DNA from: Carpediemonas membranifera BICM
Lineage: Eukaryota > Protista > Fornicata
DNA length: 64,000 nt
Direction of reading: 5' to 3'
NCBI GenBank assembly: GCA_019828565.1
Contig: JAHDYR010000005.1
Location: forward strand, 1,091,342 to 1,155,341
A model generated the notes under the pieces. It ran no database searches, was not told the DNA's origin, and worked only from the letters and a program-made list of their open reading frames with translations. How positions within the stretch are numbered: the first letter of the stretch is position 1; each line of letters begins with the position of its first letter. A program made the translations under genes and the position numbers. Of the stretch, positions 16,343 through 64,000 are shown in pieces.

Positions 16343-16415
16343 GCTCCTTTAGCTCAGTTGGTAGAGCGTGTGATTAGTAATCACAAGGTCCTCGGTTCGA
16401 ATCCGGGAGGGAGCA
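16343..16415 (+). tRNA. tRNA-Thr (anticodon AGT)
   Basis: Cloverleaf: acceptor GCTCCTT/AGGGAGC, D arm GCTC-AGTTGGTA-GAGC, anticodon arm TGTGA-TTAGTAA-TCACA, T arm CTCGG-TTCGAAT-CCGGG; no encoded CCA. Confidence 0.97.
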
Positions 16416-16418
16416 AAC

Positions 16419-16422
16419 TTTT
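16419..16422 (+). terminator. Putative Pol III terminator (T4) lying in the 3' end of a family-A retrotransposon
   Basis: TTTT 3 nt after the tRNA; the same AACTTTTATG begins every family-A copy. Confidence 0.6.
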
Positions 16423-16974
16423 ATGTAATCAACGACAAACTGTCTAGCGAGCTAGCTGTCCTAGCCTCTAGACATACTTGCTCTACCCAACGGGGGGGGC
16501 GATCGTTTATTAAAGAAGAGAGCTAGTGTAAACGATCAGGGGACTCCGGCCAGCTTACCTACTGGGCGGATATACCGGTCTTGACCAGTATCGTGCCGTC
16601 GGATCTGGATGTTCCGAATTTTCTACCATTCTGCCCGCATAAACTGCGCGGCTCGCCTGGTCGGCGCATCACCATGCCGGAGCGAGGCGATCTCATTGCC
16701 CTCCGCTCACGGCCCGTTACCCGAGGTAACCTGTCAGCGCGATGTAACGCCAGCTAGCTGTCCTAGCCTCTAGACATACTTGCTCTACCCAACGGGGATA
16801 TCCCACCGGCAACGAGCATAGTGGAATGGCTTGCAGGCACGCTTGCGAGCCCAAACCGACCGTCTCCTCGAGAGACCGCGTCAAAGAATGTCTGTTGTGG
16901 CTTACATCTGCCGTTGTAACGCGTGTCAGCCCCACCCTACCTAGCTCTCCCAGCCACTAGCTCCCGTCAGAGAT

Positions 16975-17880
16975 TTAAAGTGGTGGTTGGAGAAGGATGG
17001 AGGCCAGGTGTCCCTGGACCCCCGGGTGTGTGCGGACCCCGTTGCCCATATATCTCAGCATGCTTTTCGTGGAGGCCCACGTCCCCATGGACAGGAGGAC
17101 TTCGGTACTCGTGTGGGCTACCGCCAACTCCGTGGTGGCGCCCTTGCGGAATGAGTGCCACGAAATGTCGGTGCCGTACGCCTGGTGGATCCAGTGGCGG
17201 AGGGTTGACGCCGGTAGCGGCTTCGATAGTGAAATACCACCGGTTGAGGTGATCGCCCGCCAGATGAGGTCGTCGTCGCGGCGCGTTGCCGTGGGGACCC
17301 ATGCCTTCAGGGCCCTTGCTGGGTTAAAGCGGGCCCACGATTGGTTTGGTACCAGCTTGCGGACGCCTGTGGCAGTCTTAGTTCTCGCGAACAGAAGGAG
17401 GGCATTGCCATCAGCGTCGAACTCGACGTCTCTTCGTCTGAGCCCAAAGATCTCTGCGCCTCTACTCACGGTGATAAAGCAGAGAGCAGAAAAGAGGGCG
17501 GCCTGGAAGGCTTGGGGTGACTTCCGACGTCTGTCTATGACCCTGCGGACTCTCGCGGACGTGACAGGCTTCGCACCCCCGGTCAGGCCTTCTACAGAGG
17601 CGACGTTCCGGGCGGCGGCGATTATCTGCTTGGCAGCGATCGGGGGGCGCCAGTCAGACACGAGTGGGGCGGCCTCGCAAATCCAGTAGCCTTTCCTGTG
17701 TATCGACTGTGGGCCCGACGTGGTACCCTCGGTCAGAAGGAACTCTTTGAGCTGTTGCGCGTGTGAGTGGCTCGCGTTGCGGGATTGGAGGAATTTGGCG
17801 ACCCAGCCCGCTGCTGTGCGGCGCGACGATTCGTTTCTGAAATGTGATAGTCGGTCGTCAGCGAGGAGGGCTTGGAACGG
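16975..17880 (-). CDS. YR element 4 tyrosine recombinase
   Basis: VSRGAEI, ARTKT, WHSFRKGA, GTWASTKSMLRY; start approximate. Confidence 0.9.
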   Translation of the reverse strand, partial: PFQALLADDRLSHFRNESSRRTAAGWVAKFLQSRNASHSHAQQLKEFLLTEGTTSGPQSIHRKGYWICEAAPLVSDWRPPIAAKQIIAAARNVASVEGLTGGAKPVTSARVRRVIDRRRKSPQAFQAALFSALCFITVSRGAEIFGLRRRDVEFDADGNALLLFARTKTATGVRKLVPNQSWARFNPARALKAWVPTATRRDDDLIWRAITSTGGISLSKPLPASTLRHWIHQAYGTDISWHSFRKGATTELAVAHTSTEVLLSMGTWASTKSMLRYMGNGVRTHPGVQGHLASILLQPPL

Positions 17881-19750
17881 GTTTTCAGGATAAGCGCCAC
17901 GAAGCGGATCTTGCCCTTGTCTGTCGCTGTCCAGGCTAGCTCGGACTGCAGGAGGTGTTTCGCCTGGACTCTGAGGTACAACTTGAGGGGTGTCAAACGT
18001 TTGATGGCTCGGACCTCGGGCGAGTTGAGGTCCGGGCACAGGACTATCGCCGCTGATCTCCAGTGTCGAGGGTTCCCAGTCTGGGTCGAGGCGCGTATTG
18101 TCTGGAGGCGACGACACGTCACTCCAAGAAGGGCTATAGGAGGAGCTATATAAATCCTGACTCCCCTCCAGTCCATCTGGAAGCCGTTGTCGTGGATTGA
18201 CCAGGCTATTTCTGCAAAGCCTGGTAAGGCCAGAACCTTGTCGGGGCGTGCTGTGACGTCGATCTCGACCGGCCCCCCACTTGCGCATGATGGTTTCCAA
18301 GACTTCTCGGGGTGACGACCAGTCGAGCTTGGCGAACCTGGAGAGCCTGTCCGCCTGGACATTCAGGTGTCCGGCAATATGGAAGCAGTGGACGTCGAGG
18401 CGCTTGGTTTCTGCCGTGTTGTAGATGTCCTGTAGGATCTGGTGTGCGGCTGGGGGAGGTTCGGCGATCCCCGTCTGTTTACCCAGCTGATGGCAGCTGA
18501 GTTGTCGGCAAAGACTGTGAGAGAGGAGCGTGACTCCTGCTGGGGCACGAGATTGATCGCCTGAGCGATCGCGAAGAGCTCCTTGACGCCAATGTGTTCC
18601 CCCTTGAGATGAGGGGGGAAGGCACCCTGTGATGCCGCTCCCTTCTCCCCATTGAACAGGCATGCTCCCCAGCCGGACGTTGATGCGTCTGAGGTGACAG
18701 AAATCTGGAGCGTATCGCGTATTTCCCAGTCCGCTCTTGCTTCGGCGAACCTCTTGGGTGGGCGATCGCGGAGGAGGACTTGCCACGCCGCCAGCTGCCT
18801 GCGGATTTGGCTGGAGAGGTGGACGGTCTCCGTCGTAGGGGTGGCCTGCAGTGGTCTGAGTGCGAGGCGGGCGAACTGTGTGGTCCCTGCGAAGAATGAC
18901 AGACGGCCTAGGAGCTTCTGCCAGTCTGAAGCTGTGATGGACCCGACCCGGAGGGCCTTGGAGATCGTGGCCGTGTAGGCCTCGGCCTTGTCTTTTGAGA
19001 TTCTTAGGGACTCGCTTGCGGTGTCTATGTGGACACCTAGGTAGTCTACCTGCTGGGTCGGCGTGAGGACGCACTTGTTGAGGCCCGGTATCGCCCCCAG
19101 CGATAGCATGAGGTCGATGATCTGCGGGGTGACCGAAGCTAGGTACGATGGGGAGGCATGGGACACTAAGAAGTCGTCGAGATAGACCGCGATGGTCACC
19201 CCGAACCTGTGTGCGATGATCTTTGCAAGCTGTATGGTCGTGCTCTGGAACACGTACGGCGCCGCTGTCCATCCGAAGCCGAGTGTGTTGTACCTGAATG
19301 CGCGGCCGTCCGGTAGGACCACGCCTAGGAGGGGGAGTCTCGCGAGGCGACGCCAAGTTGGTGGTATCCCGATGCTAGGTCTATCTTGATCATGTAGTCG
19401 TTCTTGTGCAGATTGCGGACCGCCCGTCTGATGCCGAACAGACGAAACACCCTCAGCTCTGCTGTCAACTCGTTCAGGGCTCGGAGGTCGTGCACGGGGC
19501 GGACATCGTCTTTGCCCTTCGACACCGCGAACAGGGGTGCGCTGTGACGCAGTTCGTCTATCGGGCACGGGGAGAGGACGCCCTTGGCGACTAGCTCTTC
19601 GATCTTCGGGAGTAGGCGGGGGTCCACTCGCCTTTGCGGTTCTGGTGGAGGGGGCGCAGAGGTGAGGTGGATAGGGACGCCATCCCGCAGCCAGCTTACT
19701 ACCTCGGGGGAGGCACCGAGTCTTGCCCACACCGGCCACTTTTTGTTCAT
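17733..19750 (-). CDS. YR element 4 RT / RNase H / MT-like ORF (frameshifted)
   Basis: IDLASGYHQ, LGFGWTAAP, YLDDFL; TSDAS, KELFAI, FADNS, NVQADRLSR; FQMDW..YIAPP. Confidence 0.88.
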
Positions 19751-20308
19751 TGACGGGAACTGAACATCTGTGGCAAGGGCTACTTCTTGTGCTTCTTGTG
19801 AAACCCCCCCTTTGTTCTGGGGCTGGTCCTTTCTCTTACCCTTGGCTCTGGCTTTGGCTGCGCAGTAGGAGATGGCACGGGGGGTTTTGGTCTGGGACGT
19901 GTTGAACAAGTCGAGAAACAGTTCGCAGGTTGCGTCCGACCAGTTGTCGTCCTTGAGGTCCAGAAGGGTACGGCGTGCTTGGAGTTCCACCAGGAGTCTT
20001 GCTTTGAGCGGCTCGTCGTCGAGGGCGTTGACGATCACCATCACGCGGCGAAGCCACTTTGCTTCCGCCTTAAGTGGTCTCTTTGTCGGAAGCTCGCCGT
20101 ATGCATCCATCTCTGCCAGTGTTTGGTCAATATCCGCTTCATCTTGTTCAGGGAAGAAATCAATTTGAGATTCCTTCGGCGGCTCGGTCTCGGGCGGCGG
20201 AGGAGGCGGATTAAGCTTTGCAAGCTGTTGCGAGATGGTAGCGATTGAGGCTTCTAGGTTATTGAGCCTCGTTGCCGTCGGATCTGGATGTTCCGAATTT
20301 TCTACCAT
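19750..20308 (-). CDS. YR element 4 ORF1 (Gag-like; in frame with RT start in this assembly)
   Basis: MVENSEH... ORF starting inside repeat A. Confidence 0.65.
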
Positions 20309-20653
20309 TCTGCCCGCATAAACTGCGCGGCTCGCCTGGTCGGCGCATCACCATGCCGGAGCGAGGCGATCTCATTGCCCTCCGCTCACGGCCCGTTACC
20401 CGAGGTAACCTGTCAGCGCGATGTAACGCCAGCTAGCTGTCCTAGCCTCTAGACATACTTGCTCTACCCAACGGGGATATCCCACCGGCAACGAGCATAG
20501 TGGAATGGCTTGCAGGCACGCTTGCGAGCCCAAACCGACCGTCTCCTCGAGAGACCGCGTCAAAGAATGTCTGTTGTGGCTTACATCTGCCGTTGTAACG
20601 CGTGTCAGCCCCACCCTACCTAGCTCTCCCAGCCACTAGCTCCCGTCAGAGAT

Positions 20654-22228
20654 TTAAAGTGGTGGTTGGAGAAGGATGGAGGCCAGGTGTCCCTGGACCC
20701 CCGGGTGTGTGCGGACCCCGTTGCCCATATATCTCAGCATGCTTTTCGTGGAGGCCCACGTCCCCATGGACAGGAGGACTTCGGTACTCGTGTGGGCTAC
20801 CGCCAACTCCGTGGTGGCGCCCTTGCGGAATGAGTGCCACGAAATGTCGGTGCCGTACGCCTGGTGGATCCAGTGGCGGAGGGTTGACGCCGGTAGCGGC
20901 TTCGATAGTGAAATACCACCGGTTGAGGTGATCGCCCGCCAGATGAGGTCGTCGTCGCGGCGCGTTGCCGTGGGGACCCATGCCTTCAGGGCCCTTGCTG
21001 GGTTAAAGCGGGCCCACGATTGGTTTGGTACCAGCTTGCGGACGCCTGTGGCAGTCTTAGTTCTCGCGAACAGAAGGAGGGCATTGCCATCAGCGTCGAA
21101 CTCGACGTCTCTTCGTCTGAGCCCAAAGATCTCTGCGCCTCTACTCACGGTGATAAAGCAGAGAGCAGAAAAGAGGGCGGCCTGGAAGGCTTGGGGTGAC
21201 TTCCGACGTCTGTCTATGACCCTGCGGACTCTCGCGGACGTGACAGGCTTCGCACCCCCGGTCAGGCCTTCTACAGAGGCGACGTTCCGGGCGGCGGCGA
21301 TTATCTGCTTGGCAGCGATCGGGGGGCGCCAGTCAGACACGAGTGGGGCGGCCTCGCAAATCCAGTAGCCTTTCCTGTGTATCGACTGTGGGCCCGACGT
21401 GGTACCCTCGGTCAGAAGGAACTCTTTGAGCTGTTGCGCGTGTGAGTGGCTCGCGTTGCGGGATTGGAGGAATTTGGCGACCCAGCCCGCTGCTGTGCGG
21501 CGCGACGATTCGTTTCTGAAATGTGATAGTCGGTCGTCAGCGAGGAGGGCTTGGAACGGGTTTTCAGGATAAGCGCCACGAAGCGGATCTTGCCCTTGTC
21601 TGTCGCTGTCCAGGCTAGCTCGGACTGCAGGAGGTGTTTCGCCTGGACTCTGAGGTACAACTTGAGGGGTGTCAAACGTTTGATGGCTCGGACCTCGGGC
21701 GAGTTGAGGTCCGGGCACAGGACTATCGCCGCTGATCTCCAGTGTCGAGGGTTCCCAGTCTGGGTCGAGGCGCGTATTGTCTGGAGGCGACGACACGTCA
21801 CTCCAAGAAGGGCTATAGGAGGAGCTATATAAATCCTGACTCCCCTCCAGTCCATCTGGAAGCCGTTGTCGTGGATTGACCAGGCTATTTCTGCAAAAGC
21901 CTGGTAAGGCCAGAACCTTGTCGGGGCGTGCTGTGACGTCGATCTCGACCGGCCCCCACTTGCGCATGATGGTTTCCAAGACTTCTCGGGGTGACGACCA
22001 GTCGAGCTTGGCGAACCTGGAGAGCCTGTCCGCCTGGACATTCAGGTGTCCGGCAATATGGAAGCAGTGGACGTCGAGGCGCTTGGTTTCTGCCGTGTTG
22101 TAGATGTCCTGTAGGATCTGGTGTGCGGCTGGGGGGAGGTTCGGCGATCCCCGTCTGTTTACCCAGCTGATGGCAGCTGAGTTGTCGGCAAAGACTGTGA
22201 GAGAGGAGCGTGACTCCTGCTGGGGCAC
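20654..22228 (-). pseudogene. Duplicated YR and partial RNase H/MT coding region of YR element 4
   Basis: Near-identical to 16975-18550. Confidence 0.85.
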
Positions 22229-23849
22229 GAGATTGATCGCCTGAGCGATCGCGAAGAGCTCCTTGACGCCAATGTGTTCCCCCTTGAGATGAGGGGGGAA
22301 GGCACCCTGTGATGCCGCTCCCTTCTCATGAGAGCAGGCATGTAAGCGCGTACCACGTCGAACATGAACGCCCTAGATAGGCATCCATAAGCGTTCGATA
22401 AGTCGAGGGAGACAACAGTCCCTCCCTCCTCGTAGACCCTGGTCACGCTGTCACTCAGCCTCTCCAGGCCGCACTTCTCCCCCACCCCATACTGATCCTT
22501 GAGGGTCCGGTCGACGTCGACCAGGCGGGCCCTCACAGCCCAGGCGAGAGCCTTCGCCGCAACCCGCCGAAGCGAGTCCCCGATGGCCACTCCTCGGATC
22601 TTCCCGGCCCCCTTGGGGACCGGGACAATGATGCAGTGGCTCAATACCGCGGTGTAGGTCTCGCCGTTCAGGATGTCCTGTACGATCGGCATCAATGCGG
22701 CGATGAGGTCATGTCTGGCCACCTTCGCTGCTATTCTGATATGGAGGAAGGACAAGCCCGACGGCCCTGGGGCCGCCTCGGCCTTTAGAGCGTGTAGTAC
22801 AGTCTTGAGGGTCCTAGCGGACACCTCAACTGACTGCAGTGGCTCTGCGGGGACGTCCTTAAACGGAACATCTGGGCGCAGGCCACTGTAATCCTCCTGC
22901 AGTCTCTTCAGCTCTACATCCACCTCCTGTGGTGACAGGCCCGCATCCTCAGCTACCAGCGCAGTGGCTGCCTTGGACACGAACCCGTGGCGAACCAGTC
23001 GCATCACCTTACGCCACTTGGACGGGCGGCGCTTGGGGCCTTTCGATGCAACCGGCGGTGCGTACAGCGCCTTCGGGTACTCGAGTACCGTCCTCAGGGC
23101 CGCGCGCTTCTCGTCCTCGCTCTCCACGAGGGCCACCCGCTTGAGCTTCTCGATCAGGCCTCTGGCGAATTTCTCGCGTCCCCTCTTGGGGGGAGCGATC
23201 TTGCCAAGGAAGAGAGCCTGTCCCGGTGGTAGGAACACGTCGGGTCGATGGGCTGGGTGAGCGGGAGGGGCAGTCGGGGGGCTTGCGGTGAAGCCCACCG
23301 CGGTGACGTGCGCTGCTGCGCTCGGCTGCGATGACAGCTGGCTACCAGGGGCGTGGACCTCTTCGACAGATGGAAGGAGACTGGCAGGGTCGTTGTTGCC
23401 CATCACGTTTCTCCTGATCTCTCGGAAGAATTCGGCCGCCACCGACGGAGCTGTTTTGGCAGAACGCAGCGGTGTTGCTTTGGGAGTACTGCTAAGAGTA
23501 ACACCCGCCGCGTCTAAGAGCCGCTTGAAGGAATCTACGATGTCCTTCAGTGCTCTCACCGTCAAACGCACAATCTTCTTGTTGTTCACGTCCTTCATCA
23601 GCTCGACGATGGCCGCTTCGGAGCACAGCGTATCAAACACTGTCTCTACATTGCACCAACGTGCGTCAATGAACTCAGCATTGACGAATTTCGCGTAGTC
23701 GGTACGAACAGTCTGCAGCAGAAGCTGTACGTCCCGAGCAAGCGCGTTTTCGCGCCAATCGGACGTTATGGAAACTCTCATCGCCATCTGGCCTCCAGGA
23801 TCAGCCTGGGGCGCAGAAAATGACGACATTTCCATTTCGGGAGGGAGCA

Positions 23850-24239
23850 CAGTTTATTGCCTTTTGGACGAACTGTATTGCGAGCGGCGAGGCGCAGCCG
23901 AGCTTCGCGAGCCTGAGCGCAGCGAAGACGTCACTCTAGTGGTCAGTATGTCGGGTTTGAGGCACTGCTCGCTCCGAAATCTCCCTTTCGACTCTCCACT
24001 CAGTCACAACGAACGCGAACGCGAATAACGCGCAGATCACGCTCAAAGTACAGAAACAACATCAGTATTAGTGGTTGAGGCCATTAGCCTCAGCTTGACG
24101 GTGCGCAGCATCCGCCTGGCGCATGAACGCATGGAACACATGAACTTGCTTTCGCGCCATACGAGTCTCGTACGTCGTCGAGTCACCATCTGGCCTCCAG
24201 GATCAGCCTGGGGCACAGAAAATGACGACATTTCCATTT
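23850..24239 (-). mobile_element. Non-autonomous mini-B element copy 1 (390 bp)
   Basis: B 5' end fused to B ORF end and 3' UTR at GCT microhomology; flanked by 12-mers at 23838 and 24240. Confidence 0.9.
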
Positions 24240-24251: not shown

Positions 24252-27200
24252 AACTTTTATGTAATCAACGACAAACTGTCTAGCGAGCGGCGAGGCGCAG
24301 CCGAGCTTCGCGAGCCTGAGCGCAGCGAAGCAGTTTGAGGCTATGGGGTGCGTCGGGGTCCTCCGTCGCTCCATCCAGTGAGTCGCTGGCGAGTCAACAA
24401 AACCAACAAGAACACTCTGAAGCGCTCTGCACGAGCCGATTGCTACACCAATATCAGAATTGAGTAACAATTAGTGGGAGAGGCCCAAATCCTCTGCTGC
24501 AGCATGTGCTGCGTCGCATTGCTTGATGAACGCTGCATATGTGTGCACTTGCCCTCTCATGCACGCCAAGAAAGCGTTATCAGCCATCTCGCGGACCTGC
24601 TCAGCCTTAAGACCAAGTTCATCGCGCAAATCGTCCGTCCAGCCCCCTTCCGTGCACTCTTCCAACGTCACCGTTGTGAAGCGTCACCGCGGGTATGAGC
24701 TTGACGTCCCAGTTGGAGTACTGGGCGCGCTTGCTCGTCATGGCCTGAGACACGTGGTTGCTGACGACGTTGTCAATGACGATTGCCTTCACGCCAGGTT
24801 TCGTGAGGAGGATGTCCGCCCGCGCCTTCATAGGCTTGGTCCGGTCAATGGTCCACTCACTGGCCTTGTTCAACCACACCTCGGACTGGACTCTCCAGCC
24901 ATAACCCTTCAGGTCTCTCACCAGCCCGTCCTTGATAGCGTTGTGACGCTCGTCGTCCAGGCCTCCACGGAGGCATGGGCAGCACAGGGTGTGAGTAGCG
25001 TTGCACACAACGGACTGGTGGTTCACGGTGCGTGCCCTGCAGAGAGGGCAGACGTCAAATCCGGGCGTGAATGCGGGGAGGCCCAGGTGATTGCGGAAGA
25101 TGGGGGCAACAGCGGCATCGGTTACCGAGCGCCCAAGAGAGGTCGGGTCGACCATCATGAACGACCGAACGACGTTGGGCGAGACGGCGGCACTCACAGA
25201 GAGCTTGGTGGCAATAGATTCCTCAACGAGGCGAACCAAGTTCTTCTGCGTGTGGTCGGCGTCAAGAGCCTTCACATCGTCCAAGCCACTAGGCCAGTTC
25301 GACGGCGTGTTGAGCTGGGGCGGGAGACACTTGATGGCACCCGTCACGCTGTCAGGTGAGCGTGTAACACCCAGCCCTGCCAGTTGTCTCGTGGCCGCGA
25401 GGAACGCGGGAGCCCACACGACTGATGGCATTGCCAGCGCAAGCCCGCGTCTTTCGACCGGCATACTCAGGCGGAGAGCAAAGTCGTCATCGACCTCAGC
25501 CTCGCTCGACAGGATTCGGAGGATGGCCGGGACCGCCTCTTTCTTCTCAAATCCGAGCTCAGCCTCGTAGAGACCGTTGCCGACTCCACCCGTTGCGGGG
25601 GGAACGTTACGGAAGAAGTGCTCCCACTTTGTGAGCGCACAATACTTCGCAATGATCAACGCAGGGGCAGTTGCCTCCGGCCCCTCCTTGGCCACCATCT
25701 CTCCGGCAGCGTTAAGGAGTTGCATCACGCGACTGTTGACCTTGGCCAACTCACCCATCGCATGAGCAGCGGACCCAACCGGAACGCCCACGAGAAACAT
25801 GAACGCCCTAGATAGGCATCCATAAGCGTTCGATAAGTCGAGGGAGACAACAGTCCTCCCTCCTCGTAGACCCTGGTCACGCTGTCACTCAGCCTCTCCA
25901 GGCCGCACTTCTCCCCCACCCCATACTGATCCTTGAGGGTCCGGTCGACGTCGACCAGGCGGGCCCTCACAGCCCAGGCGAGAGCCTTCGCCGCAACCCG
26001 CCGAAGCGAGTCCCCGATGGCCACTCCTCGGATCTTCCCAGCCCCCTTGGGGACCGGGACAATGATGCAGTGGCTCAATACCGCGGTGTAGGTCTCGCCG
26101 TTCAGGATGTCCTGTACGATCGGCATCAATGCGGCGATGAGGTCATGTCTGGCCACCTTCGCTGCTATTCTGATATGGAGGAAGGACAAGCCCGACGGCC
26201 CTGGGGCCGCCTCGGCCTTTAGAGCGTGTAGTACAGTCTTGAGGGTCCTAGCGGACACCTCAACTGACTGCAGTGGCTCTGCGGGGACGTCCTTAAACGG
26301 AACATCTGGGCGCAGGCCACTGTAATCCTCCTGCAGTCTCTTCAGCTCTACATCCACCTCCTGTGGTGACAGGCCCGCATCCTCAGCTACCAGCGCAGTG
26401 GCTGCCTTGGACACGAACCCGTGGCGAACCAGTCGCATCACCTTACGCCACTTGGACGGGCGGCGCTTGGGGCCTTTCGATGCAACCGGCGGTGCGTACA
26501 GCGCCTTCGGGTACTCGAGTACCGTCCTCAGGGCCGCGCGCTTCTCGTCCTCGCTCTCCACGAGGGCCACCCGCTTGAGCTTCTCGATCAGGCCTCTGGC
26601 GAATTTCTCGCGTCCCCTCTTGGGGGAGCGATCTTGCCAAGGAAGAGAGCCTGTCCCGGTGGTAGGAACACGTCGGGTCGATGGGCTGGGTGAGCGGGAG
26701 GGGCAGTCGGGGGGCTTGCGGTGAAGCCCACCGCGGTGACGTGCGCTGCTGCGCTCGGCTGCGATGACAGCTGGCTACCAGGGGCGTGGACCTCTTCGAC
26801 AGATGGAAGGAGACTGGCAGGGTCGTTGTTGCCCATCACGTTTCTCCTGATCTCTCGGAAGAATTCGGCCGCCACCGACGGAGCTGTTTTGGCAGAACGC
26901 AGCGGTGTTGCTTTGGGAGTACTGCTAAGAGTAACACCCGCCGCGTCTAAGAGCCGCTTGAAGGAATCTACGATGTCCTTCAGTGCTCTCACCGTCAAAC
27001 GCACAATCTTCTTGTTGTTCACGTCCTTCATCAGCTCGACGATGGCCGCTTCGGAGCACAGCGTATCAAACACTGTCTCTACATTGCACCAACGTGCGTC
27101 AATGAACTCAGCATTGACGAATTTCGCGTAGTCGGTACGAACAGTCTGCAGCAGAAGCTGTACGTCCCGAGCAAGCGCGTTTTCGCGCCAATCGGACGTT

Positions 27201-27270
27201 ATGGAAACTCTCATCGCCATCTGGCCTCCAGGATCAGCCTGGGGCGCAGAAAATGACGACATTTCCATTT
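24252..27270 (-). mobile_element. CRE-like family A copy 2 (~415-bp deletion at ~25794 removes RT QGDP/YQDD core)
   Basis: Comparison with copy 37882-41316. Confidence 0.92.
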
Positions 27271-44764: not shown

Positions 44765-44776
44765 CGGGAGGGAGCA

Positions 44777-45166: not shown

Positions 45167-45178
45167 CGGGAGGGAGCA

Positions 45179-48613: not shown

Positions 48614-48625
48614 CGGGAGGGAGCA

Positions 48626-52766: not shown

Positions 52767-52788
52767 GGTAAGGTTACCTTACCTTACC
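52767..52788. repeat. Head-to-head (TAAGG)n/(CCTTA)n telomere-like junction
   Basis: GGTAAGG-TTACCTTACCTTACC exactly at the breakpoint. Confidence 0.6.
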
Positions 52789-53391: not shown

Positions 53392-53421
53392 ACTTGAAGA
53401 GATATCAATTCAATCAATCAT

Positions 53422-54318: not shown

Positions 54319-54359
54319 TATGCGCTCACGGAGCAGCGAAAGGACTGAATAAGCAGGAG

Positions 54360-54795
54360 TTATTTGGAGTACTTACCTCCAACGTCGTGCTCGTGATCCG
54401 AAGACACTTCTCGGCGGACCTTCTGGACAAGGCTGTCGTAGGCATGATCTCCCATGACCTTCTTCAGCTCAGCCGATGTCGTGATCAGCTCAAGCTGAGC
54501 CTCGGCAGTTTCTCTTAGGTGCAGGATAAGGTGAGGCGACCTGAAGAGCTTGCGAAGCGTTTTCCAGCCAATATCTGTGTAAAAAGGTATGGGGAAAGTA
54601 CTTACGATCACGAAGAAGGGCGGTGAGGATCTTGTCATCGGGCAGAAGGAACTTACGAAGAAGTGAGCACTTGATCATCTCCTGCGCGTTTGATGAGGCC
54701 TGACTGATCTCAGCGCTGTCATAGAAGATAAAGAACTGCTTACCAAACGTTTTCGAACGCTTCAAGAGCATGTAGAAGTCGAAAACCGATTGCAT
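54360..54795 (-). CDS. Hypothetical protein (two overlapping frames, probable frameshift)
   Basis: ORFs 54490-54795 and 54360-54638 with coding-like composition. Confidence 0.45.
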
Positions 54796-54799
54796 GATT

Positions 54800-54968
54800 A
54801 TAAGGCTCTCAGGACCTAATGAAAAAATTCATAAGGCTCTGAGAGCCTAATAAACCATGCGGAAAAATGACCAGTATCAGTAGGCAACGGCGCGCGGGAG
54901 ATTCATTAGGCTCTGAGAGCCTTATACACGATTTCGAATTGGTGTATAAGGCTCTGAGAGCCTTATGA
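54800..54968. repeat. Cluster of AGGCTC(T/A)GAGAGCCT-type imperfect palindromes
   Basis: AGGCTCTGAGAGCCT at 54834, 54908 and 54949, plus a degenerate copy near 54803. Confidence 0.85.
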
Positions 54969-55496
54969 ACTCAGAGGAGGTCCTCGGGGCACTTCGGTGC
55001 AGAATTTTGATTGGGCATCTGATTGGACCATGGGGCGGATGCTCAGAGGGATGAATGCGAGCTCAATGGAGACCATTGGACATGTCAGAGATGGCATGTC
55101 CAGGTGAAGGTCCATCATGGAAGGAGCCATTCACGATAAGTCTTCTAAATGTTGTGTTGCGAGCGTCTGAAGGGCTTTCTCTGGATACCGACCAAGATGG
55201 AGGTCACGTGGATCAACGGACGATAATTGCGGTATTCTGGCCTTGTATGCCACTCTTAAATCCATTGTTTGATCCATTCCCGCGTTTATAGTTCATCTCA
55301 ACGCTTCCTCGACGAGTTACAATTGTTGATGTTGTTTAGGTTCTATTACAGGCCATTCGAGGCCACAGAGCTCTCATGATGTTGTTTTTAGTGATATGCA
55401 CATGCTTGCCAGCGTTTGAGGATCGATACTCTTCTCCTTTCTTCGTTTGGTTTTCTAATTTCGTTGCGAGCATAAAGTGCACCTTGAAGAAACGTT

Positions 55497-56183
55497 ATGC
55501 CTCCGAAACGGAGTAATACTGCTAAGAGCAAGGGCAGAAAGCGTCTAAACGCTGTGGAAATGATTTCTACTTACTTAGAGAAGGAGCACGCTGCTGGAAG
55601 CATCTCCGCTGCCGATGTCGCCACCGGAAACCGCATTTGCAATGAGGTGGTTGACAGACGCCCCAATGACCTCCCCACATTCGTTCCGGAGGATCTTAGG
55701 GATGAAGCGGAGTTCCGTTCTCTCGATAGCATTGAGCAGATCATGGCGCAGTACAAGGGCGAGTCTTCTGAGGCCAAGGAGAAGCGCTTCAGGGCCCTCA
55801 TCAGCCTGGACGCCGAAGGAGATGAGGTCGACCATGGCAGCCCTCTCTTGGCAACTGTCCGTGAGTACCGCGAGCTGTTCCACGGCATCCCTCAGTCGGT
55901 CCGCCCCCGCGCTTACGCCTTCGTCGCCCAGAGGCTTGGTATCTCTGTCGACAAGGTCAGAGAGGTCCTTCTGGAGAGTGTGTGCCGCAAGGACTCTAAG
56001 CTCATCTTCGAGCGTCCGCAGCTTGTCCTCAAGAAGCACTCGAAGACCTTCAAGGACCTCGCCGCTGTGATTGAGAAGAGGAACGCTGCCCGTGCCGCTG
56101 CAGAGGCTCGTGATGTTCTGCGTATACCCGTTTACGCGAGCCTCCTGCTCTTCCACGCAGCTAACGTCAACTCAAATGAGTAA
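55497..56183 (+). CDS. Hypothetical protein (228 aa, basic NLS-like N-terminus)
   Basis: ATG-started ORF MPPKRS..KGRKR in an AT-richer flanking context. Confidence 0.65.
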   Translation: MPPKRSNTAKSKGRKRLNAVEMISTYLEKEHAAGSISAADVATGNRICNEVVDRRPNDLPTFVPEDLRDEAEFRSLDSIEQIMAQYKGESSEAKEKRFRALISLDAEGDEVDHGSPLLATVREYRELFHGIPQSVRPRAYAFVAQRLGISVDKVREVLLESVCRKDSKLIFERPQLVLKKHSKTFKDLAAVIEKRNAARAAAEARDVLRIPVYASLLLFHAANVNSNE

Positions 56184-56203
56184 TAAATCGACTGCTTCTT
56201 CAT

Positions 56204-57058
56204 TTAATCTTCATTCTCTTCCTCATCTTCCTTCTCAGACAGCAGATGGTACCACTCTTCCTCGAAATAGTTCTCTTTCTGGTAATCCTTACGCATCTTT
56301 GATCTCTTATCCACGATCTTTTGGACCAAATCCCTTCGGTTGCTGTCGTAAAGGGCGATGATTATCTCACGTTGCTTCTTGCGCGTCGGGTGCGGGGTAA
56401 CACTCTTCCTCAGACGCTTAATGTAGCGGTTGAGCTTGTCCGAGGGCTTGGTGGGCAGGGTGGGTTGGGTGGCTTGGGTTCTCTTTGGGGGAGGCTGGAC
56501 CTGGTCCACAGAAGTGAAAGCCGTACCGTAGTCGACGGACGGGGGAGCCCTCCAGGACTTCATGGCATATCCATGGCAAGCAACGAGACTCTCACCGAGC
56601 TTCGTCCACTTGTTCGGGCCGTATGTTGCCTCCATGGTCACCAGTTTCGCATCATCCAGGTACTCCATCGTGGACTTTTGCTTGGAGATGGACATCCCCA
56701 TACGCTGGTAGGCTGGCACAAGAGAACTTACACACTGCAGGCGGATCCTCTGTCCGGCAGAGGCAACCGAAAGAAGAATCGTGGCGAGACCATTGCCCCT
56801 GGCATAGAATGCCGTGCGAATAACCACAACATATAAGTCCTGGCGCAGCTCGGAAGGGGTTTCATCAGTAGCTTCGGTGTTGTATGACTCCTTCGTGAGC
56901 AACAAGGCCGAAATGATGGAATCAGTCTTGCAGTCACGAATCGCAACCAATCTGGGTAAATACCTGGGCAACACTGGGTGAACAAACATGAAGAAGCGAT
57001 GATCGATGTCATCAACTCCTCTCGTGGCAACGTCCTGCTTAAAAAAACGTACGGACAC
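56204..57058 (-). CDS. GNAT-family acetyltransferase-like protein
   Basis: Motif A VIRTAFYARGNGLATILL and motif B LVPAYQRMGM; start uncertain. Confidence 0.68.
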   Translation of the reverse strand: MSVRFFKQDVATRGVDDIDHRFFMFVHPVLPRYLPRLVAIRDCKTDSIISALLLTKESYNTEATDETPSELRQDLYVVVIRTAFYARGNGLATILLSVASAGQRIRLQCVSSLVPAYQRMGMSISKQKSTMEYLDDAKLVTMEATYGPNKWTKLGESLVACHGYAMKSWRAPPSVDYGTAFTSVDQVQPPPKRTQATQPTLPTKPSDKLNRYIKRLRKSVTPHPTRKKQREIIIALYDSNRRDLVQKIVDKRSKMRKDYQKENYFEEEWYHLLSEKEDEEENED

Positions 57059-57146
57059 TGGGGATGATGTCTGACTTATCAGAAAGTCTTACGTACTGTA
57101 TATAAGCCTTATGGGCTGCAAGAGTATCCTCTGTCCAAGATTCTTT

Positions 57147-59920
57147 CCCCGTTTGGTTCATTTTCACAAACTTTTTGTGAAACCTGCGAAATGTGAAATG
57201 TGCCATTCATGAAAAAAAGTGGCACATATGAAAAATGAATGAATTTATCACGGAACCATCTTACATCACTTTATATCACGCGGATGCCTCAATTCTGTCT
57301 GCTACACTCTCCACACAGGCAGCAAACTAACTCTATGCCATGGTCCGCCAGACTGCATGACATCGTGCCCTCCTCACCCCACGTCAGCGTCGTATGCTCT
57401 TCTACAAACTCCCACACTTCATCAACAGTCTCCTGAAAGGTCTGGATCATCTCACGAGTTGGCTCGAAGGTCACGGTGGTCAGTGTGCGGACACCAAACC
57501 AATGCTTCGCATCCTTACAGCAGTCGTGAACTCGCACACACTTGAGTCGCTGGAGCTGGGGGACAGAGTAGTCCTGCCGACCAAAAAGAACGCATGCCCG
57601 TCAGGAAGGAACACGCGAGAGTTGTCTGCTCGATCAAGCAAATGCCCTCAAGGACTGCCTTCCTGTGCAACTTGGCTGCTACCTCCTGGTTCTTGATGAA
57701 CTCTCGCTCAAAGTACTCCTCTAGGATATAGAACAGCGGCACCTTGAGATGCTTGTGGCACAGGGGGCTGCGTCGTGAGTCTGCTGATGCTGTAGAGGTT
57801 CTCAGCGCACGGTTTCTCCTTCGTCTTCGCTTCGCTGCTTGATAGCAGGGATATGGAAGTCTTATCCTTGTTAGGAATGAACGCAATCGTGACGTGAATG
57901 AGGTGGGCCACTGCGGCAGCCATGAAGTGAAACGCGACAGCCGCGTCAGTCACAGGTTCGGACGAGTAGTACATGGCCTGGAGGTAGCCAATGAGCCGAA
58001 TGATATCTTGAATGCACTCAGGGAGAGCAACGTAGTCCTCTTGGTCGTGGCAGCCATCCTTACACGTGCGGACGACTGCTCGTTACAACCTACGGTCCTA
58101 TCGATGCTTCGCATGGACGACATACGGCCAAGCTTGAGGTTGAGGAGCTTATTCTGGATGATCTCCTCGCGGGACCCGCGGGTGGTGGGATGCTTCTTGA
58201 AAGAACCACAGATATGGGCAACCTGCTCGAGTAAACGGTGCGAGTCGTGCATGAATGGAGGGCATATGACGATCTTCTCAAGAGGGATGACACTACAATT
58301 CTCGAACACCATGCGTTCATTGGTGAAATCGCCATAGATTGCAAGTACATCTTGAACTCGGTTCGGGTCGTCGACTTCAGCCTGGTATGCTGTCTTATCG
58401 TCCAGGTTGTCCTTGATGGTGAGACGATGGCGGCCTGCTATCGGGTGGAGCGCCTTACTTTTTTTGTGGTAAATCGTGTTGCAAGGGTGTGGATAGTTGG
58501 GCCGGCCCGACTTTCTGGACAGCATGTGGCGGAGGGCGGCATGATCGCCCATGACGATGACATGGTCGAAGATCGTGACCTCACCAGTGTCTCTGATGGG
58601 TATCTGACTCGTATATAGGCGCTCAATCTCCTTCTCGACGCGAGAAAGAGACTCTTCCATCAACAAATCACCCTCGCTACCCATATACTCGACTATACGG
58701 AAAGGTGGAGTAATCTTGTTGGGGAATGTGAAGCCTGTGGGGTCGTAGATGCGGAGCTTGAAGGCAGCAGAACCCCCTTTCCACCCGTCAAGCCATAGTA
58801 GGATCTTCATGGGGCTAAACGTGACTCCAACCCTGTTGCCAAGGGCGTTCTTGCATCGAACGTAGTTGGGCTGGTCCGACTCGAGCCATTCCGGGTGGCG
58901 AACAGCTTGCTTGAGGTAACGAACGGCATCAAACCAGACTCGATCAACCTTGTCCCATGTGGAGCTGTTGAGCCGCTTGCCGAGGGTGACTCCCTGGGTC
59001 TGCTTGAGCTCAGGGCGATGACTTGTGGCCTCATCGCTCGTCTCGTAGTGAAGATCAAGCATTGGCTTCTCCCACTTGAAGTCAATGACGTTCTCCGCGT
59101 CCGTCAGGGGCTGGATATCGACACCCTCGTCCACCGTTAGGCGATTGGTGCACTCGAGTCTCGACTTTGTGCCATTTCTGCCCCACCGCCAGGTCGTGTT
59201 GACTGTGACAGACTCCACAGGGACGAGATGACCCAAGAAAGCAACCTCTGGTCTAGTCAGCGCTGCAACCAGGCCGTTGATCTTGGTGATATTGACCTGC
59301 AACTGCTTCACGAAGATATCAGCAGCCTTGCTGGAGATGATTGGCATATGAAGTCGCGCAGAAAGACTACGGATGAGCTTAAAGAGCTCATGGGTTGCGT
59401 TACAACCCGACTTGATGTACATCAGGATAGAAACAAGCTCCAAAAATCTGCTTGTAGTTGTCAGTTTCCTCAGTTGAGACCTCGTGCTGTCTCCGCAAGC
59501 GTTCGTGGGTGACAGCAATACGCGCGTGGTCACGTACGAAGACATCGAAGGTCGGGGCGACTCCTCTATGGGAACGTACTGCACGCAAGAAGGGTCGAGA
59601 GTCGTGCGGGTCGGCGAAAAATCTCGGATCGACCTCCATGTCCGCAAATAGGCCCTGGTTAGCCATTTCCAAGATGAGTTCACGGAATTCTCGGCGCTGG
59701 CGGCCTCGATCCTGTGTATTTCCGCCAATACCAACAAGGGAGAGGTATGTATGAGCGAGAATGTAGTTCATACGCTCTGCAGTCCTTGGAGGGCCAGTAT
59801 TGTCGTAGACAGTGCCTATGAAGGTCTGTATGACAATGTGCATGCTCAGGAATTTTTGCTGAAGTCACTTTCACATTTCACAAGTTTCACAAGAGTTTGT
59901 GAAAGATTTTTGGTTTGGGG
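57147..59920 (-). mobile_element. Putative degenerate DNA transposon with RAG1/Transib/Chapaev-like transposase (fragments 57289-59843)
   Basis: Imperfect inverted repeats at ~57162-57215 and ~59852-59904; LWLDG, MGDHAAL..YPHPC, PPFMH..R..E, EEYFE; no clear TSD. Confidence 0.5.
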
Positions 59921-60359
59921 CTTCCGCTGCTCTGTTTCCTCCAAAAAGTTGTGAGCAGCAACTACACTGAGTTTTATACGTATTCTATGCTTCTCATACC
60001 CATTGATGCGTTATTGCGCAATTCTGCTTTGCCCTCAAAGGAAAAGTGAATTTGAATTTCCCCCTGAATCTTGCAAGATACTGCGGAAGTAACGGTAAGA
60101 AAAAATGAAACTCGCCAACGAAAGCAGCTGGAAGAAAATGGTAAAAAGTATTGGAACTAGGACAATATGGTGTACACTCTGAGCAACTTCATTTCTTTCT
60201 GGCGTTCACCTGTGTCACGAGCTCTTTGGGCACTGTTTCGGGCGTTAGGACAAACCAAGGGTTCCATGATCCTTTGTTGATCTAGTTACACCTCTGTTGT
60301 TAGCACAATCTTCCAAGACCATCTCATCGTTGATAAAATTTTGCAGATTTTTCGAATGC

Positions 60360-60466
60360 GAGAAAATGAAGACTTCCCCACAGAACCTGAGTATGTACGG
60401 ATAGTACTTGACCCCCATGGATTATCCCCCCATGTTTGGTTTTTGTGGGGAAGTCTTCATTTTCTC
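60360..60466. repeat. Inverted repeat with ~28-bp arms
   Basis: GAGAAAATGAAGACTTCCCCACA...TGTGGGGAAGTCTTCATTTTCTC. Confidence 0.85.
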
Positions 60467-63078
60467 AATCTCTGATTCAATCATTAATTCATACGGAAGT
60501 AGAAGATACTGGAGGCTGAAAACTTCAGAGGGCATTGCTATTAGCTATAAAACACCGCTGTTAAGATCCCATGTTCGAACGAGCACTTCACATTTACAAC
60601 ATAAAATGCGTTATCCTCTTTTATCAACACTGACACCATGTGATACTTCAAGACGCCAGACATGTCTTTTATGCTTCTATAACTACCTTCTAGATGTTCT
60701 GGAGGTGCCTGAGATCGCCTGGATCGCGAGGTTTGACCAGCGTTGACACATGAGTATCTCCAGAGTATCTCCCGGGAGACTCTAGCCATTCTTACAGTAT
60801 GACTGATGGCATTGCCAGCGCAAGCCCGCGTCTTTCGACCGGCATACTCAGGCGGAGAGCAAAGTCGTCATCGACCTCAGCCTCGCTCGACAGGATTCGG
60901 AGGATGGCCGGGACCGCCTCTTTCTTCTCAAATCCGAGCTCAGCCTCGTAGAGACCGTTGCCGACTCCACCCGTTGCGGGGGGAACGTTACGGAAGAAGT
61001 GCTCCCACTTTGTGAGCGCACAATACTTCGCAATGATCAACGCAGGGGCAGTTGCCTCCGGCCCCTCCTTGGCCACCATCTCTCCGGCAGCGTTAAGGAG
61101 TTGCATCACGCGACTGTTGACCTTGGCCAACTCACCCATCGCATGAGCAGCGGACCCAACCGGAACGCCCACGAGGTTTAGGCTGCGTCTTCTTGGGACG
61201 CCTCCCGAGGTGTTGCCGTCGGTAACGTCTCTGTGCGCCACAACGCACTTCGACTTGTTGAGCCGCAGGCCGACTTCGAGGAACTTCTCCCTCGCGATCT
61301 CGACAAGGTTGTTAGCCTCTCGGCCGACACCGGGCGTCTGCAAAGGCCGATCAGTCGTGGCGACTAGATCGTCTTGGTACGCTTGGAGGTGCCAACCCGG
61401 GAACGCCTCGCGCAGAACGTCCAGAATGGGCTTGATGCCCAGGCTGAACAGAATAGGGGACAGGGGATCTCCTTGATGTATGCCCTCAGCTGACCTTATC
61501 ACTCCTCCTGACGTGGAGAATAGGAGCCCTTGGCGATACATCGTAGACAGGTAGGGCATGAGAGCAGGCATGTAAGCGCGTACCACGTCGAACATGAACG
61601 CCCTAGATAGGCATCCATAAGCGTTCGATAAGTCGAGGGAGACAACAGTCCCTCCCTCCTCGTAGACCCTGGTCACGCTGTCACTCAGCCTCTCCAGGCC
61701 GCACTTCTCCCCCACCCCATACTGATCCTTGAGGGTCCGGTCGACGTCGACCAGGCGGGCCCTCACAGCCCAGGCGAGAGCCTTCGCCGCAACCCGCCGA
61801 AGCGAGTCCCCGATGGCCACTCCTCGGATCTTCCCGGCCCCCTTGGGGACCGGGACAATGATGCAGTGGCTCAATACCGCGGTGTAGGTCTCGCCGTTCA
61901 GGATGTCCTGTACGATCGGCATCAATGCGGCGATGAGTTCATGTCTGGCCACCTTCGCTGCTATTCTGATATGGAGGAAGGACAAGCCCGACGGCCCTGG
62001 GGCCGCCTCGGTCTTTAGAGCGTGTAGTACAGTCTTGAGGGTCCTAGCGGACACCTCAACTGACTGCAGTGGCTCTGCGGGGACGTCCTTAAACGGAACA
62101 TCTGGGCGCAGGCCACTGTAATCCTCCTGCAGTCTCTTCAGCTCTACATCCACCTCCTGTGGTGACAGGCCCGCATCCTCAGCTACCAGCGCAGTGGCTG
62201 CCTTGGACACGAACCCGTGGCGAACCAGTCGCATCACCTTACGCCACTTGGACGGGCGGCGCTTGGGGCCTTTCGATGCAACCGGCGGTGCGTACAGCGC
62301 CTTCGGGTACTCGAGTACCGTCCTCAGGGCCGCGCGCTTCTCGTCCTCGCTCTCCACGAGGGCCACCCGCTTGAGCTTCTCGATCAGGCCTCTGGCGAAT
62401 TTCTCGCGTCCCCTCTTGGGGGAGCGATCTTGCCAAGGAAGAGAGCCTGTCCCGGTGGTAGGAACACGTCGGGTCGATGGGCTGGGTGAGCGGGAGGGGC
62501 AGTCGGGGGGCTTGCGGTGAAGCCCACCGCGGTGACGTGCGCTGCTGCGCTCGGCTGCGATGACAGCTGGCTACCAGGGGCGTGGACCTCTTCGACAGAT
62601 GGAAGGAGACTGGCAGGGTCGTTGTTGCCCATCACGTTTCTCCTGATCTCTCGGAAGAATTCGGCCGCCACCGACGGAGCTGTTTTGGCAGAACGCAGCG
62701 GTGTTGCTTTGGGAGTACTGCTAAGAGTAACACCCGCCGCGTCTAAGAGCCGCTTGAAGGAATCTACGATGTCCTTCAGTGCTCTCACCGTCAAACGCAC
62801 AATCTTCTTGTTGTTCACGTCCTTCATCAGCTCGACGATGGCCGCTTCGGAGCACAGCGTATCAAACACTGTCTCTACATTGCACCAACGTGCGTCAATG
62901 AACTCAGCATTGACGAATTTCGCGTAGTCGGTACGAACAGTCTGCAGCAGAAGCTGTACGTCCCGAGCAAGCGCGTTTTCGCGCCAATCGGACGTTATGG
63001 AAACTCTCATCGCCATCTGGCCTCCAGGATCAGCCTGGGGCTCAGAAAATGACGACATTTCCATTTCGGGAGGGAGCA

Positions 63079-63468
63079 CAGTTTATTGCCTTTTGGACGA
63101 ACTGTATTGCGAGCGGCGAGGCGCAGCCGAGCTTCGCGAGCCTGAGCGCAGCGAAGACGTCACTCTAGTGGTCAGTATGTCGGGTTTGAGGCACTGCTCG
63201 CTCCGAAATCTCCCTTTCGACTCTCCACTCAGTCACAACGAACGCGAACGCGAATAACGCGCAGATCACGCTCAAAGTACAGAAACAACATCAGTATTAG
63301 TGGTTGAGGCCATTAGCCTCAGCTTGACGGTGCGCAGCATCCGCCTGGCGCATGAACGCATGGAACACATGAACTTGCTTTCGCGCCATACGAGTCTCGT
63401 ACGTCGTCGAGTCACCACCTGGCCTCCAGGATCAGCCTGGGGCACAGAAAATGACGACATTTCCATTT
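63079..63468 (-). mobile_element. Non-autonomous mini-B element copy 3
   Basis: Same junction; 12-mers at 63067 and 63469. Confidence 0.9.
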
Positions 63469-63480
63469 CGGGAGGGAGCA

Positions 63481-64000
63481 AACTTTTATGTAATCAACGA
63501 CAAACTGTCTAGCGAGCGGCGAGGCGCAGCCGAGCTTCGCGAGCCTGAGCGCAGCGAAGCAGTTTGAGGCTATGGGGTGCGTCGGGGTCCTCCGTCGCTC
63601 CATCCAGTGAGTCGCTGGCGAGTCAACAAAACCAACAAGAACACTCTGAAGCGCTCTGCACGAGCCGATTGCTACACCAATATCAGAATTGAGTAACAAT
63701 TAGTGGGAGAGGCCCAAATCCTCTGCTGCAGCATGTGCTGCGTCGCATTGCTTGATGAACGCTGCATATGTGTGCACTTGCCCTCTCATGCACGCCAAGA
63801 AAGCGTTATCAGCCATCTCGCGGACCTGCTCAGCCTTAAGACCAAGTTCATCGCGCAAATCGTCCGTCCAGCCCCTTCCGTGCACTCTTCCAACGTCACC
63901 GTTGTGAAGCGTCACCGCGGGTATGAGCTTGACGTCCCAGTTGGAGTACTGGGCGCGCTTGCTCGTCATGGCCTGAGACACGTGGTTGCTGACGACGTTG
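63481..64000 (-). mobile_element. CRE-like family A copy 7 (3' end; continues past window)
   Basis: Matches A 3' UTR and ORF end. Confidence 0.92.

Follow-up and report, generated by a model that had tools for sequence, protein, structure and literature searches.

Tandem R2-like retrotransposons begin directly after the last base of a tRNA-Thr gene in Carpediemonas membranifera

Anatomy of the array

The stretch of DNA analyzed here (the window; 64,000 nucleotides, JAHDYR010000005.1:1091342-1155341 of assembly GCA_019828565.1) comes from the free-living metamonad Carpediemonas membranifera BICM. The single tRNA gene in the window is a 73-nt tRNA-Thr(AGT) at positions 16343-16415 on the forward strand, as found by ARAGORN and by an Rfam gathering-threshold scan (RF00005, 69.3 bits; gathering score 29). 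The gene is intact, as an earlier sequence-only reading had held. Position 16416, the base after discriminator nucleotide A73, is the first base of an array of retrotransposon units, every one of which runs antisense to the tRNA, ends sharply, and lacks poly(A); these properties, too, had been correctly described. The array itself had been recognized over 47 kb. It proves to be larger, comprising 13 units (U1 to U13) and 52.6 kb (window-equivalent 16416-69050), and about 21 kb of this consists of foreign elements nested within several of the units. The part beyond the window was read from locus L009 on the same contig, which overlaps window positions 52384-64000 at 100% identity.

The last 12 nt of the tRNA gene (16404-16415, forward strand; CGGGAGGGAGCA) recur between the units. 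Read from the sequence, this 12-mer corresponds to tRNA positions 62-73, which comprise 4 nt of the T stem, the 3' strand of the acceptor stem, and A73. It occurs 12 times in the window, always on the forward strand: once in the tRNA, and 11 times within the array, where 12-nt copies start at 23838, 24240, 27271, 37870, 41317, 44765, 45167, 48614, 52070, 63067, and 63469. Only 0.02 occurrences are expected, and none of 100 shuffled sequences reached 12; every position reported earlier was recovered exactly (12 of 12). Successive copies are 7434, 402, 3031, 10599, 3447, 3448, 402, 3447, 3456, 10997, and 402 bp apart. The duplicated segment is exactly 12 nt long: on its left, the tRNA has c where all 11 internal copies have t, and on its right a, c, or t follows, according to unit type. 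Among 24 junctions examined at three loci, 22 carry a perfect 12-mer and two carry one with a single mismatch, and every full-length 5' end has a 12-mer directly before it.

Two divergent families occupy the site, as had been proposed, and a mini-element accompanies them. Family A is 3435 bp long and family B is 3444 bp, and the two share about 70% nucleotide identity internally. The mini-element, mini-B, is a non-autonomous unit of 390 bp, in which B 1-92 is joined to B 3144-3444. In the element sense, full-length units open with AAATGGAAATG directly after the 12-mer, A units close in ..ACATAAAAGTT, and B units close in ..AATAAACGA or ..AATAAACTG. No unit has long terminal repeats (LTRs) or other terminal repeats, and units that are 5'-truncated or chimeric are present.

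All units lie on the reverse strand. U5 (37882-41316) is a full-length A of 3435 bp and the window's only copy with an intact open reading frame (ORF). Two further full-length A units, U6 (41329-44764) and U8 (45179-48613), carry frameshifts in homopolymer runs. U9 (48626-52069) is a full-length B of 3444 bp, with its ORF in three frames. By comparison with full-length B, mini-B forms U2 (23850-24239), U7 (44777-45166), and U11 (63079-63468), each copy being flanked by 12-mers. The remaining A units are U1 (16416-23837), a remnant that retains the A 3'-terminal 37 nt at 16416-16452 and A 1-1511 at 22327-23837; U3 (24252-27270), which by comparison with full-length A has a 415-bp internal deletion (A 1478-1892); U10 (52082-63066), in which an 8-kb insert at approximately 52768-60800 replaces A 2268-2748; and U12 (63481 to the window end at 64000), which is full length in the contig (L009). 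U4 (27283-37869) is a B unit interrupted at 29318-36458 by another element. The last unit, U13, is a 5'-truncated B (B 1316-3444) that was read from L009; it follows a 12-mer after U12 and extends to window-equivalent 69050.

Families A and B have their ends in common. A 5' terminal block (41260-41316 in U5, reverse strand) is 98-100% identical between the families over the first 54 nt. The 5' 92 nt fold into a stable hairpin (z score -4.1 in A and -4.35 in B; 0 of 200 shuffles were as stable), the core of which falls within the common 54 nt and is kept in mini-B. A second block, in the 3' untranslated region (UTR), lies 18 nt from the 3' end (37900-37960 in U5, reverse strand); its 61 nt are 95% identical and include an identical 48-nt core, and it, too, is kept in mini-B. 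The whole 367-nt 3' UTR, its last 100 nt, and the common block are each predicted to fold no better than shuffled sequences. In R2 elements, the 5' RNA controls second-strand cleavage. The R2 3' UTR RNA starts target-primed reverse transcription (TPRT) (PMC3414825). Because mini-B keeps only the two common regions, and by analogy with R2, the 5' hairpin block and the 3' UTR block are probably cis signals bound by the element protein. Mini-B is a non-autonomous element of the short internally deleted element (SIDE) type, as it has the 5' and 3' ends of an autonomous element and lies at the same target. Family A is the autonomous partner of B and mini-B.

The encoded protein

The U5 ORF (38252-41314, reverse strand; stop codon at 38249-38251) encodes 1021 amino acids, and its start codon is at element position 3. 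A reverse transcriptase (RT) domain spans residues 412-638 (39401-40081, reverse strand; Pfam RVT_1, E 2.5e-14). Residues 879-992 (38339-38680, reverse strand) match, in their conserved positions, the CCHC, RHN, and PD-(D/E)XK pattern of restriction-like endonucleases (RLEs): the CCHC is C879/C882/H898/C902, and the putative RLE residues are R913-H914 (RHN), E935, R955-A956-D957, D971, and K985. All of these residues are invariant in a four-sequence alignment (A4) with relatives that are 33-35% identical. In a 19-sequence alignment (A3), E935 is invariant, and C882, C902, H914, and D971 are at least 90% conserved. The Pfam match and these residues thus support the earlier proposal of a protein with RT, CCHC, and RLE. 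Pfam detects RVT_1 only in the ORF, with no N-terminal zinc-finger, Myb, or protease domain.

An AlphaFold model of the U5 protein has a mean pLDDT of 73.7 and a pTM of 0.68, and places a beta-sheet core at residues 931-1001. The first ~200 residues are poorly predicted and have no Pfam match. The best fold matches in the PDB are R2 TPRT complexes (8gh6, 9nl3, 9nl2, 9dou, and 8ibz; E 7e-20 to 1e-17), and the alignment to R2 spans about 900-1090 columns (about 930 at E 7e-20), including the C-terminus. LINE-1 ORF2p and then group II intron RTs rank below R2. Similarity to R2 by sequence only is marginal (E ~4e-4), and the RLE domain alone has no sequence-level PDB match. Both families belong to the non-LTR retrotransposons that resemble R2 and carry an RLE.

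The coding region of B (U9) is 51-64% identical to A at the amino-acid level, in three frames, as compared by tblastn in pieces with the frames not joined. The 1-nt indels that separate A copies all fall within homopolymer runs (for example, at A 356, 557, 645, 1065, 1559, 3040, and 3428), so the frameshifts that break the ORFs may be long-read assembly errors instead of real decay. The elements may be active at present. An exact-protein look-up of the intact U5 ORF found nothing on record.

A second occupied tRNA-Thr gene

Locus L008 (JAHDYR010000012.1:472412-493404) contains a second tRNA-Thr(AGT) gene, at 11213-11285, which is identical to that of the window over 73 nt. Here also an A-type 3' end abuts the same base of the tRNA. 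Identity between L008 and the window extends over the tRNA and the final 37 nt of A, and it ends exactly at the tRNA 5' end. On its 5' side, the L008 tRNA is followed by a solo 301-bp repeat, a gene call without a Pfam match (12170-13834), and then ordinary host genes (wyosine synthesis, UPF1, RPL37e, and a DEAD helicase), whereas in the window this side is occupied by 16 kb of other transposons. The L008 array runs on through locus L005, with a 476-bp gap between the two, and measures at least 34 kb. Outward from the tRNA, its order is a B/A chimera, a B with a nested recombinase element, three B units, an A/B chimera, an A with a nested element, and a B, an order unlike that of the window.

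At both tRNA loci the insertion distance is exactly 0, and tRNA-Thr(AGT) is the only target seen among the loci examined. The sequence-only reading had proposed specificity for the exact 3' end of tRNA-Thr, and the second occupied gene, with its different flanks and unit order, well supports this: two tRNA-Thr(AGT) genes occupied at the same phosphodiester bond constitute strong evidence of sequence-specific insertion. Clean dispersed copies that carry the 12-mer at sites other than tRNA genes, a pattern that would make the 12-mer part of the element, were not found among these loci. One candidate junction informant, L001, was rejected: this fragment of B (B 1305-3190, 97.8% identical) lies dispersed, at a site that is not a tRNA gene, and lacks both ends and the 12-mer. 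An exact DNA search for the junction in Joint Genome Institute (JGI) metagenomes gave 0 matches.

At both loci, the tRNA-adjacent unit ends in the A-rich tail of family A, which in the tRNA sense gives AACTTTT directly after A73. A TTTT run therefore lies 3 nt past the tRNA, and this element-supplied T run may act as an RNA polymerase III (Pol III) terminator for the occupied tRNA gene.

Two chimeric units were delimited. One, at L008 9172-11212, joins B 1-294 to A 1684-3435, and the other, within L005 9993-14825, consists of A 1-2633, 12 nt of filler, and B 1256-3444. Such units fit template switching or repair between the families.

Proposed mechanism and growth of the array

We consider it likely that A and B are sequence-specific for the exact 3' end of tRNA-Thr(AGT), and that TPRT with a 12-nt duplication and re-use of the site has built the array. 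The element protein would nick the tRNA-sense strand between A73 and the trailer, and the 3'-OH at the nick would prime reverse transcription of the element RNA; priming from this strand would explain why the elements are antisense to the tRNA. A second cut would fall on the other strand, 12 bp into the tRNA gene, and the last 12 nt would be duplicated by repair, so that the tRNA coding sequence is regenerated intact. Because the recognition site would survive insertion, it could be struck again, and repeated insertions would produce a head-to-tail array with units separated by the 12-mer. A nicking and TPRT assay should be feasible, since the protein is small (1021 amino acids) and the target spans only a few tens of base pairs.

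Unequal exchange possibly enlarges the array further. The block consisting of an A 5' part, a mini-B, and an A 3' part is present three times (U1-U3, U6-U8, and U10-U12), so unequal exchange may have added units. A stronger version, in which few real insertions occurred and most of the 13 units stem from unequal crossing-over or segmental duplication, is somewhat unlikely, and it would be compatible with site specificity. Apart from the threefold block, copies within a family are about 99.6% identical, and their few SNPs are mosaic, which suggests homogenization; no age gradient can be read along the array, in which older copies had been proposed to lie farther out. A preprint (bioRxiv 10.1101/158386) reports that double insertions of site-specific elements seed satellite-like arrays. 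However, the three mini-B copies (U2, U7, and U11) differ in their 3' terminal nucleotides (..CTG versus ..CGA), their neighboring units differ in indels, and the order of units next to the tRNA differs between the two loci. Chimeric and 5'-truncated units also point to separate events, so that, together with the mini-B ends, more than one reverse-transcription event appears to be recorded.

That the array is an assembly artifact, a collapsed or expanded repeat, is exceedingly improbable. Long near-identical repeats are hard to assemble, and the homopolymer indels suggest unpolished long-read sequence, but unique nested insertions, deletions, and chimeric junctions stand at fixed places, and the same kind of array occurs in a different order on two contigs, each anchored in unique flanks.

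Several observations weigh against site-specific insertion with re-use as the origin of the array. The tRNA-adjacent unit of the window, U1, is heavily rearranged, and one copy only has an open ORF. A single ancient locus that was duplicated might have given rise to both occupied loci, and the 301-bp repeat is found close to the tRNA on its 5' side in each (at a distance of 2 bp in L008 and 8.6 kb in the window); the strong evidence for sequence specificity holds even if the loci share such an origin. A third array fragment, L010 (same contig as L008, 44805-66179), is rearranged and has no tRNA within 10 kb. The evidence for site specificity comes from the loci examined rather than from a genome-wide census, and no empty tRNA-Thr site was obtained. 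Also, the distal end of the window's array had been predicted to carry the 12-mer and the original tRNA trailer. Both are absent: the 5'-truncated B (U13) is joined to unrelated DNA with no 12-mer or recognizable trailer, at a junction that lies 21 nt away from where a gene call starts. In L005, another truncated B has 12 nt of unrelated filler (12626-12637) before it and a neighbor that has lost 800 bp. If the 12-mer is a target-site duplication (TSD), both of these junctions need an extra deletion.

The solo 301-bp repeat of L008 occupies 11288-11588, 2 bp from the tRNA 5' end. Another element, too, may favor this tRNA.

Origin of the 12-mer

We lean toward the 12-mer being a TSD, an interpretation that had been offered from the start, although the evidence is mixed. 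L010 contains a 5'-truncated A, starting in the RHN motif near A 2730, that is directly preceded by a 12-mer with one mismatch. Another A copy at this locus is missing its first 2 nt, which is ordinary 5'-junction variation, and lies next to the same one-mismatch 12-mer. The variant is also found on both sides of a composite unit, and this fits the expectation for a TSD at a mutated internal copy. The arrays of Drosophila R1, whose copies are set apart by a 14-bp TSD, offer a precedent (PMC3414825). By contrast, the distal end of the window's array weighs against the TSD, as described above. The truncated B junctions fit target deletions, which have been reported for R2 (PMC3414825), and they also fit a 12-mer that travels with full-length RNA.

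The one-mismatch 12-mers of L010, at 9761 and 11594 (TGCTCCCTTCCG in the element sense), each follow a B 3' end. The change in TGCTCCCTTCCG would disrupt a T-stem pair if it were in the tRNA, and it probably arose in a spacer copy rather than in the tRNA.

It is unlikely, though worth weighing, that the 12-mer is not a TSD but is borne by the element RNA, either as a 5' leader or as a tail from 3' read-through that anneals to the nicked end of the tRNA gene. A leader could result from a transcription or processing start just upstream of the 12-mer within the array, and the 12-mer would be copied in at each insertion or template jump, much as co-transcribed rRNA guides the junctions of R2. The 12-mer before every full-length 5' end is in keeping with this, as is its absence from two of the three 5'-truncated units, including the terminal unit of the window's array. 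Moreover, the start codon is 3 nt past the 12-mer, and hence a slightly longer leader is plausible. The truncated A of L010 and the A lacking 2 nt at its start nevertheless both carry the 12-mer; this exception could come from a template jump onto a read-through B RNA, and template jumps of R2 in vivo are documented (PMC3414825). A version with a 3' tail only predicts one junction without a 12-mer per event, and there is none among the 24 junctions examined. Also, no Rfam family matches at E <= 1 over 37000-52500, so there is no ribozyme match at the junction, including to ribozymes like that of hepatitis delta virus (HDV). Over the whole window, the tRNA was the sole Rfam match at gathering thresholds.

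Read in the element sense, the 12-mer is perfectly complementary to the 3' terminal 12 nt of the tRNA, which recalls a primer-binding site. tRNA 3' processing cuts at the position that matches the tRNA/element junction. A tRNA-Thr RNA without CCA might prime reverse transcription on a read-through RNA, and the tRNA-linked cDNA might then recombine into the gene. This is very improbable, because the elements retain a complete RLE with conserved catalytic residues, the fold as a whole corresponds to that of R2 TPRT enzymes, neither an integrase nor a recombinase is encoded, and no observation requires tRNA priming.

It is quite doubtful, on a broader view, that the 12-nt complement is a working part of the element RNA, as a tail or leader that pairs with the nicked gene end or with CCA-less tRNA-Thr. 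If it were, the protein would not choose the target alone, and RNA-DNA pairing would contribute. The junction of 3' end, 12-mer, and 5' hairpin would then double as a promoter or processing site, and arrays would be self-sustaining.

Relatives and known systems

Further C. membranifera families stand at 33-42% protein identity. The closest relative outside this organism, P0008, is 35% identical. Protein searches for named relatives gave four matches with a word-indexed search and six with a 19-sequence profile, none of which was informative, and the cluster names of the 20 top representatives are almost all those of unnamed metagenome proteins. tRNA adjacency is absent near family C and other C. 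membranifera paralogues (L006 and L007), P0002-P0004, P0008, and 32 metagenome loci, although most of these contigs are short. Among the relatives examined, most of them on such short contigs, tRNA targeting is thus seen only for A and B. Adjoining P0008 is an ORF with RT and Dam methyltransferase domains (L011 5469-7031; PPCM01001310.1), a kind of element that has been described (bioRxiv 10.64898/2026.05.21.726589).

The sequence-only reading had labeled the elements CRE-like, and for A and B this label is best taken as a lead. The C. membranifera paralogue P0011 is auto-annotated as 'SLACS', and GilM and GilT of Giardia have been placed in the CRE group (PMC10088271). Members of this group (CRE1/2, SLACS, CZAR, and MoTeR) are early-branching RLE-bearing long interspersed nuclear elements (LINEs) with specificity for spliced-leader genes or telomeres, and the target of A and B differs from these. 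Family C (L006, JAHDYR010000066.1:612563-635427; about 33% amino-acid identity) forms a head-to-tail array in which at least five units, each with 93-bp tandem repeats, follow one another at a period of about 4.59 kb. A contig end is less than 1 kb away from the array, and there is no tRNA or other Rfam RNA nearby. In this it resembles the terminal arrays of GilM and GilT, which Arkhipova and Morrison reportedly found in 2001 as tandem arrays at chromosome ends.

RLE LINEs that are specific for tRNA genes have been published by Kojima and Jurka: NeSL-1_TV (tRNA-Pro, Trichomonas), LIN15_SM (tRNA-Arg), and LIN25_SM (tRNA-Glu) (PMC4640811). The earlier statement that no CRE family is known to target a tRNA 3' end must therefore be narrowed. 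Full-text literature searches found no LINE fixed to the last base of a tRNA, and no description of Carpediemonas retrotransposons. Like A and B, these three elements are of the RLE type and are sequence-specific for one kind of tRNA gene, and NeSL-1_TV also belongs to a metamonad. An N-terminal protease is present in part of the NeSL clade. According to one supplementary figure, LIN15_SM sits inside the tRNA-Arg gene, in the orientation of the tRNA, and interrupts it (PMC4640811 S6 Fig). A and B are, in contrast, inserted after position 73, antisense to a gene that is preserved; this comparison of junctions covers LIN15_SM alone, as depicted in that figure.

The R1 element of Drosophila offers a close parallel to the array described here, with tandem copies at one 28S site separated by a 14-bp TSD and with SIDEs interspersed (PMC3414825). 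Families A and B likewise appear to re-insert head to tail, with a short spacer (12 nt, compared with 14 bp in R1) that would also be a TSD, and include internally deleted elements. R1 has an apurinic/apyrimidinic endonuclease (APE) and disrupts the 28S rRNA gene, whereas A and B have an RLE and leave whole the tRNA gene at whose end they lie.

Like R2 (Bombyx mori and Taeniopygia guttata, among others), A encodes RT, CCHC, and a C-terminal RLE in one ORF, shows precise site specificity, and has conserved 5' and 3' RNA regions that are kept by mini-elements. It differs from the R2 clade in having no zinc-finger or Myb domain (Pfam), no HDV-like ribozyme (Rfam), and a target other than 28S rDNA. 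R2 insertion destroys its site and arrays are not usual, whereas A and B spare the gene and form arrays.

In the compact genome of Dictyostelium, TRE3 and Skipper-2 insert downstream of any tRNA gene, at 40-150 bp or 8-23 bp (PMC5911963). These elements are position-specific and probably guided by Pol III factors, and they use an APE (TRE3) or an integrase (Skipper-2), in contrast to the RLE and base-exact insertion of A and B. With their RLE, a distance of exactly 0, and tRNA-Thr(AGT) as the only target seen, A and B fall outside the Pol III-guided class (TRE3, TRE5, Ty3, and Skipper-2). Site-specific RLE LINEs were already known; what is new here is the target (the last base of tRNA-Thr(AGT)), the gene-sparing geometry, and the R1-like building of arrays.

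Nested and neighboring elements

U1 contains a nested tyrosine-recombinase (DIRS-like) element at 16453-22326 on the reverse strand, with Phage_integrase and RVT_1 matches. It is a 1.5-mer: 16591-18647 is directly repeated at 20269-22327 with 99.8% identity and a period of 3678 bp. A DIRS-like element lies inside family A, 37 nt from the A 3' end, at both loci (the window and L005 6267-9950), and a B unit holds a different recombinase element, 61 nt from the unit's 3' end (L008 5402-9098). The recombinase elements may have a preference for the A and B 3' UTRs.

The interruption of U4 is a 7.1-kb APE-type LINE on the forward strand (29318-36458), with an Exo_endo_phos match in ORF 30830-34183. 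A 12-bp TSD of its own flanks it (29306-29317 and 36459-36470), and its 3' tail is (AAAACTC)n. The 8-kb insert in U10 has no Pfam match in its ORFs and no terminal repeats, and its GC content (51-53%) is below the 58-60% of the array.

Upstream of the tRNA, positions 1-16342 of the window are all transposon sequence. This includes Ty3/gypsy-like pieces (integrase, RT, RNase H, and protease), an RT element bounded by the 301-bp repeat (7466-7766, with a partial copy at 11572-11700), and a second DIRS-like element (12419-15894), which ends just before the tRNA.

Significance

For precise gene insertion from an RNA template, site-specific RLE retrotransposons are the natural models, and R2 is already in development as a tool. 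Known RLE targets are mostly rDNA, spliced-leader genes, small nuclear RNA genes, microsatellites, and telomeres. The elements described here appear to strike one exact phosphodiester bond, leave the gene whole and reusable, and may replace its terminator. If so, their strategy would be to use a Pol III gene as a 'harmless landing pad', and they would provide a simple account of how a site-specific LINE turns a single-copy site into a 50-kb array. With a deep-branching free-living metamonad as host, and with the array of a sister family near a contig end, these elements bear on the age of array-forming site specificity among early LINEs.

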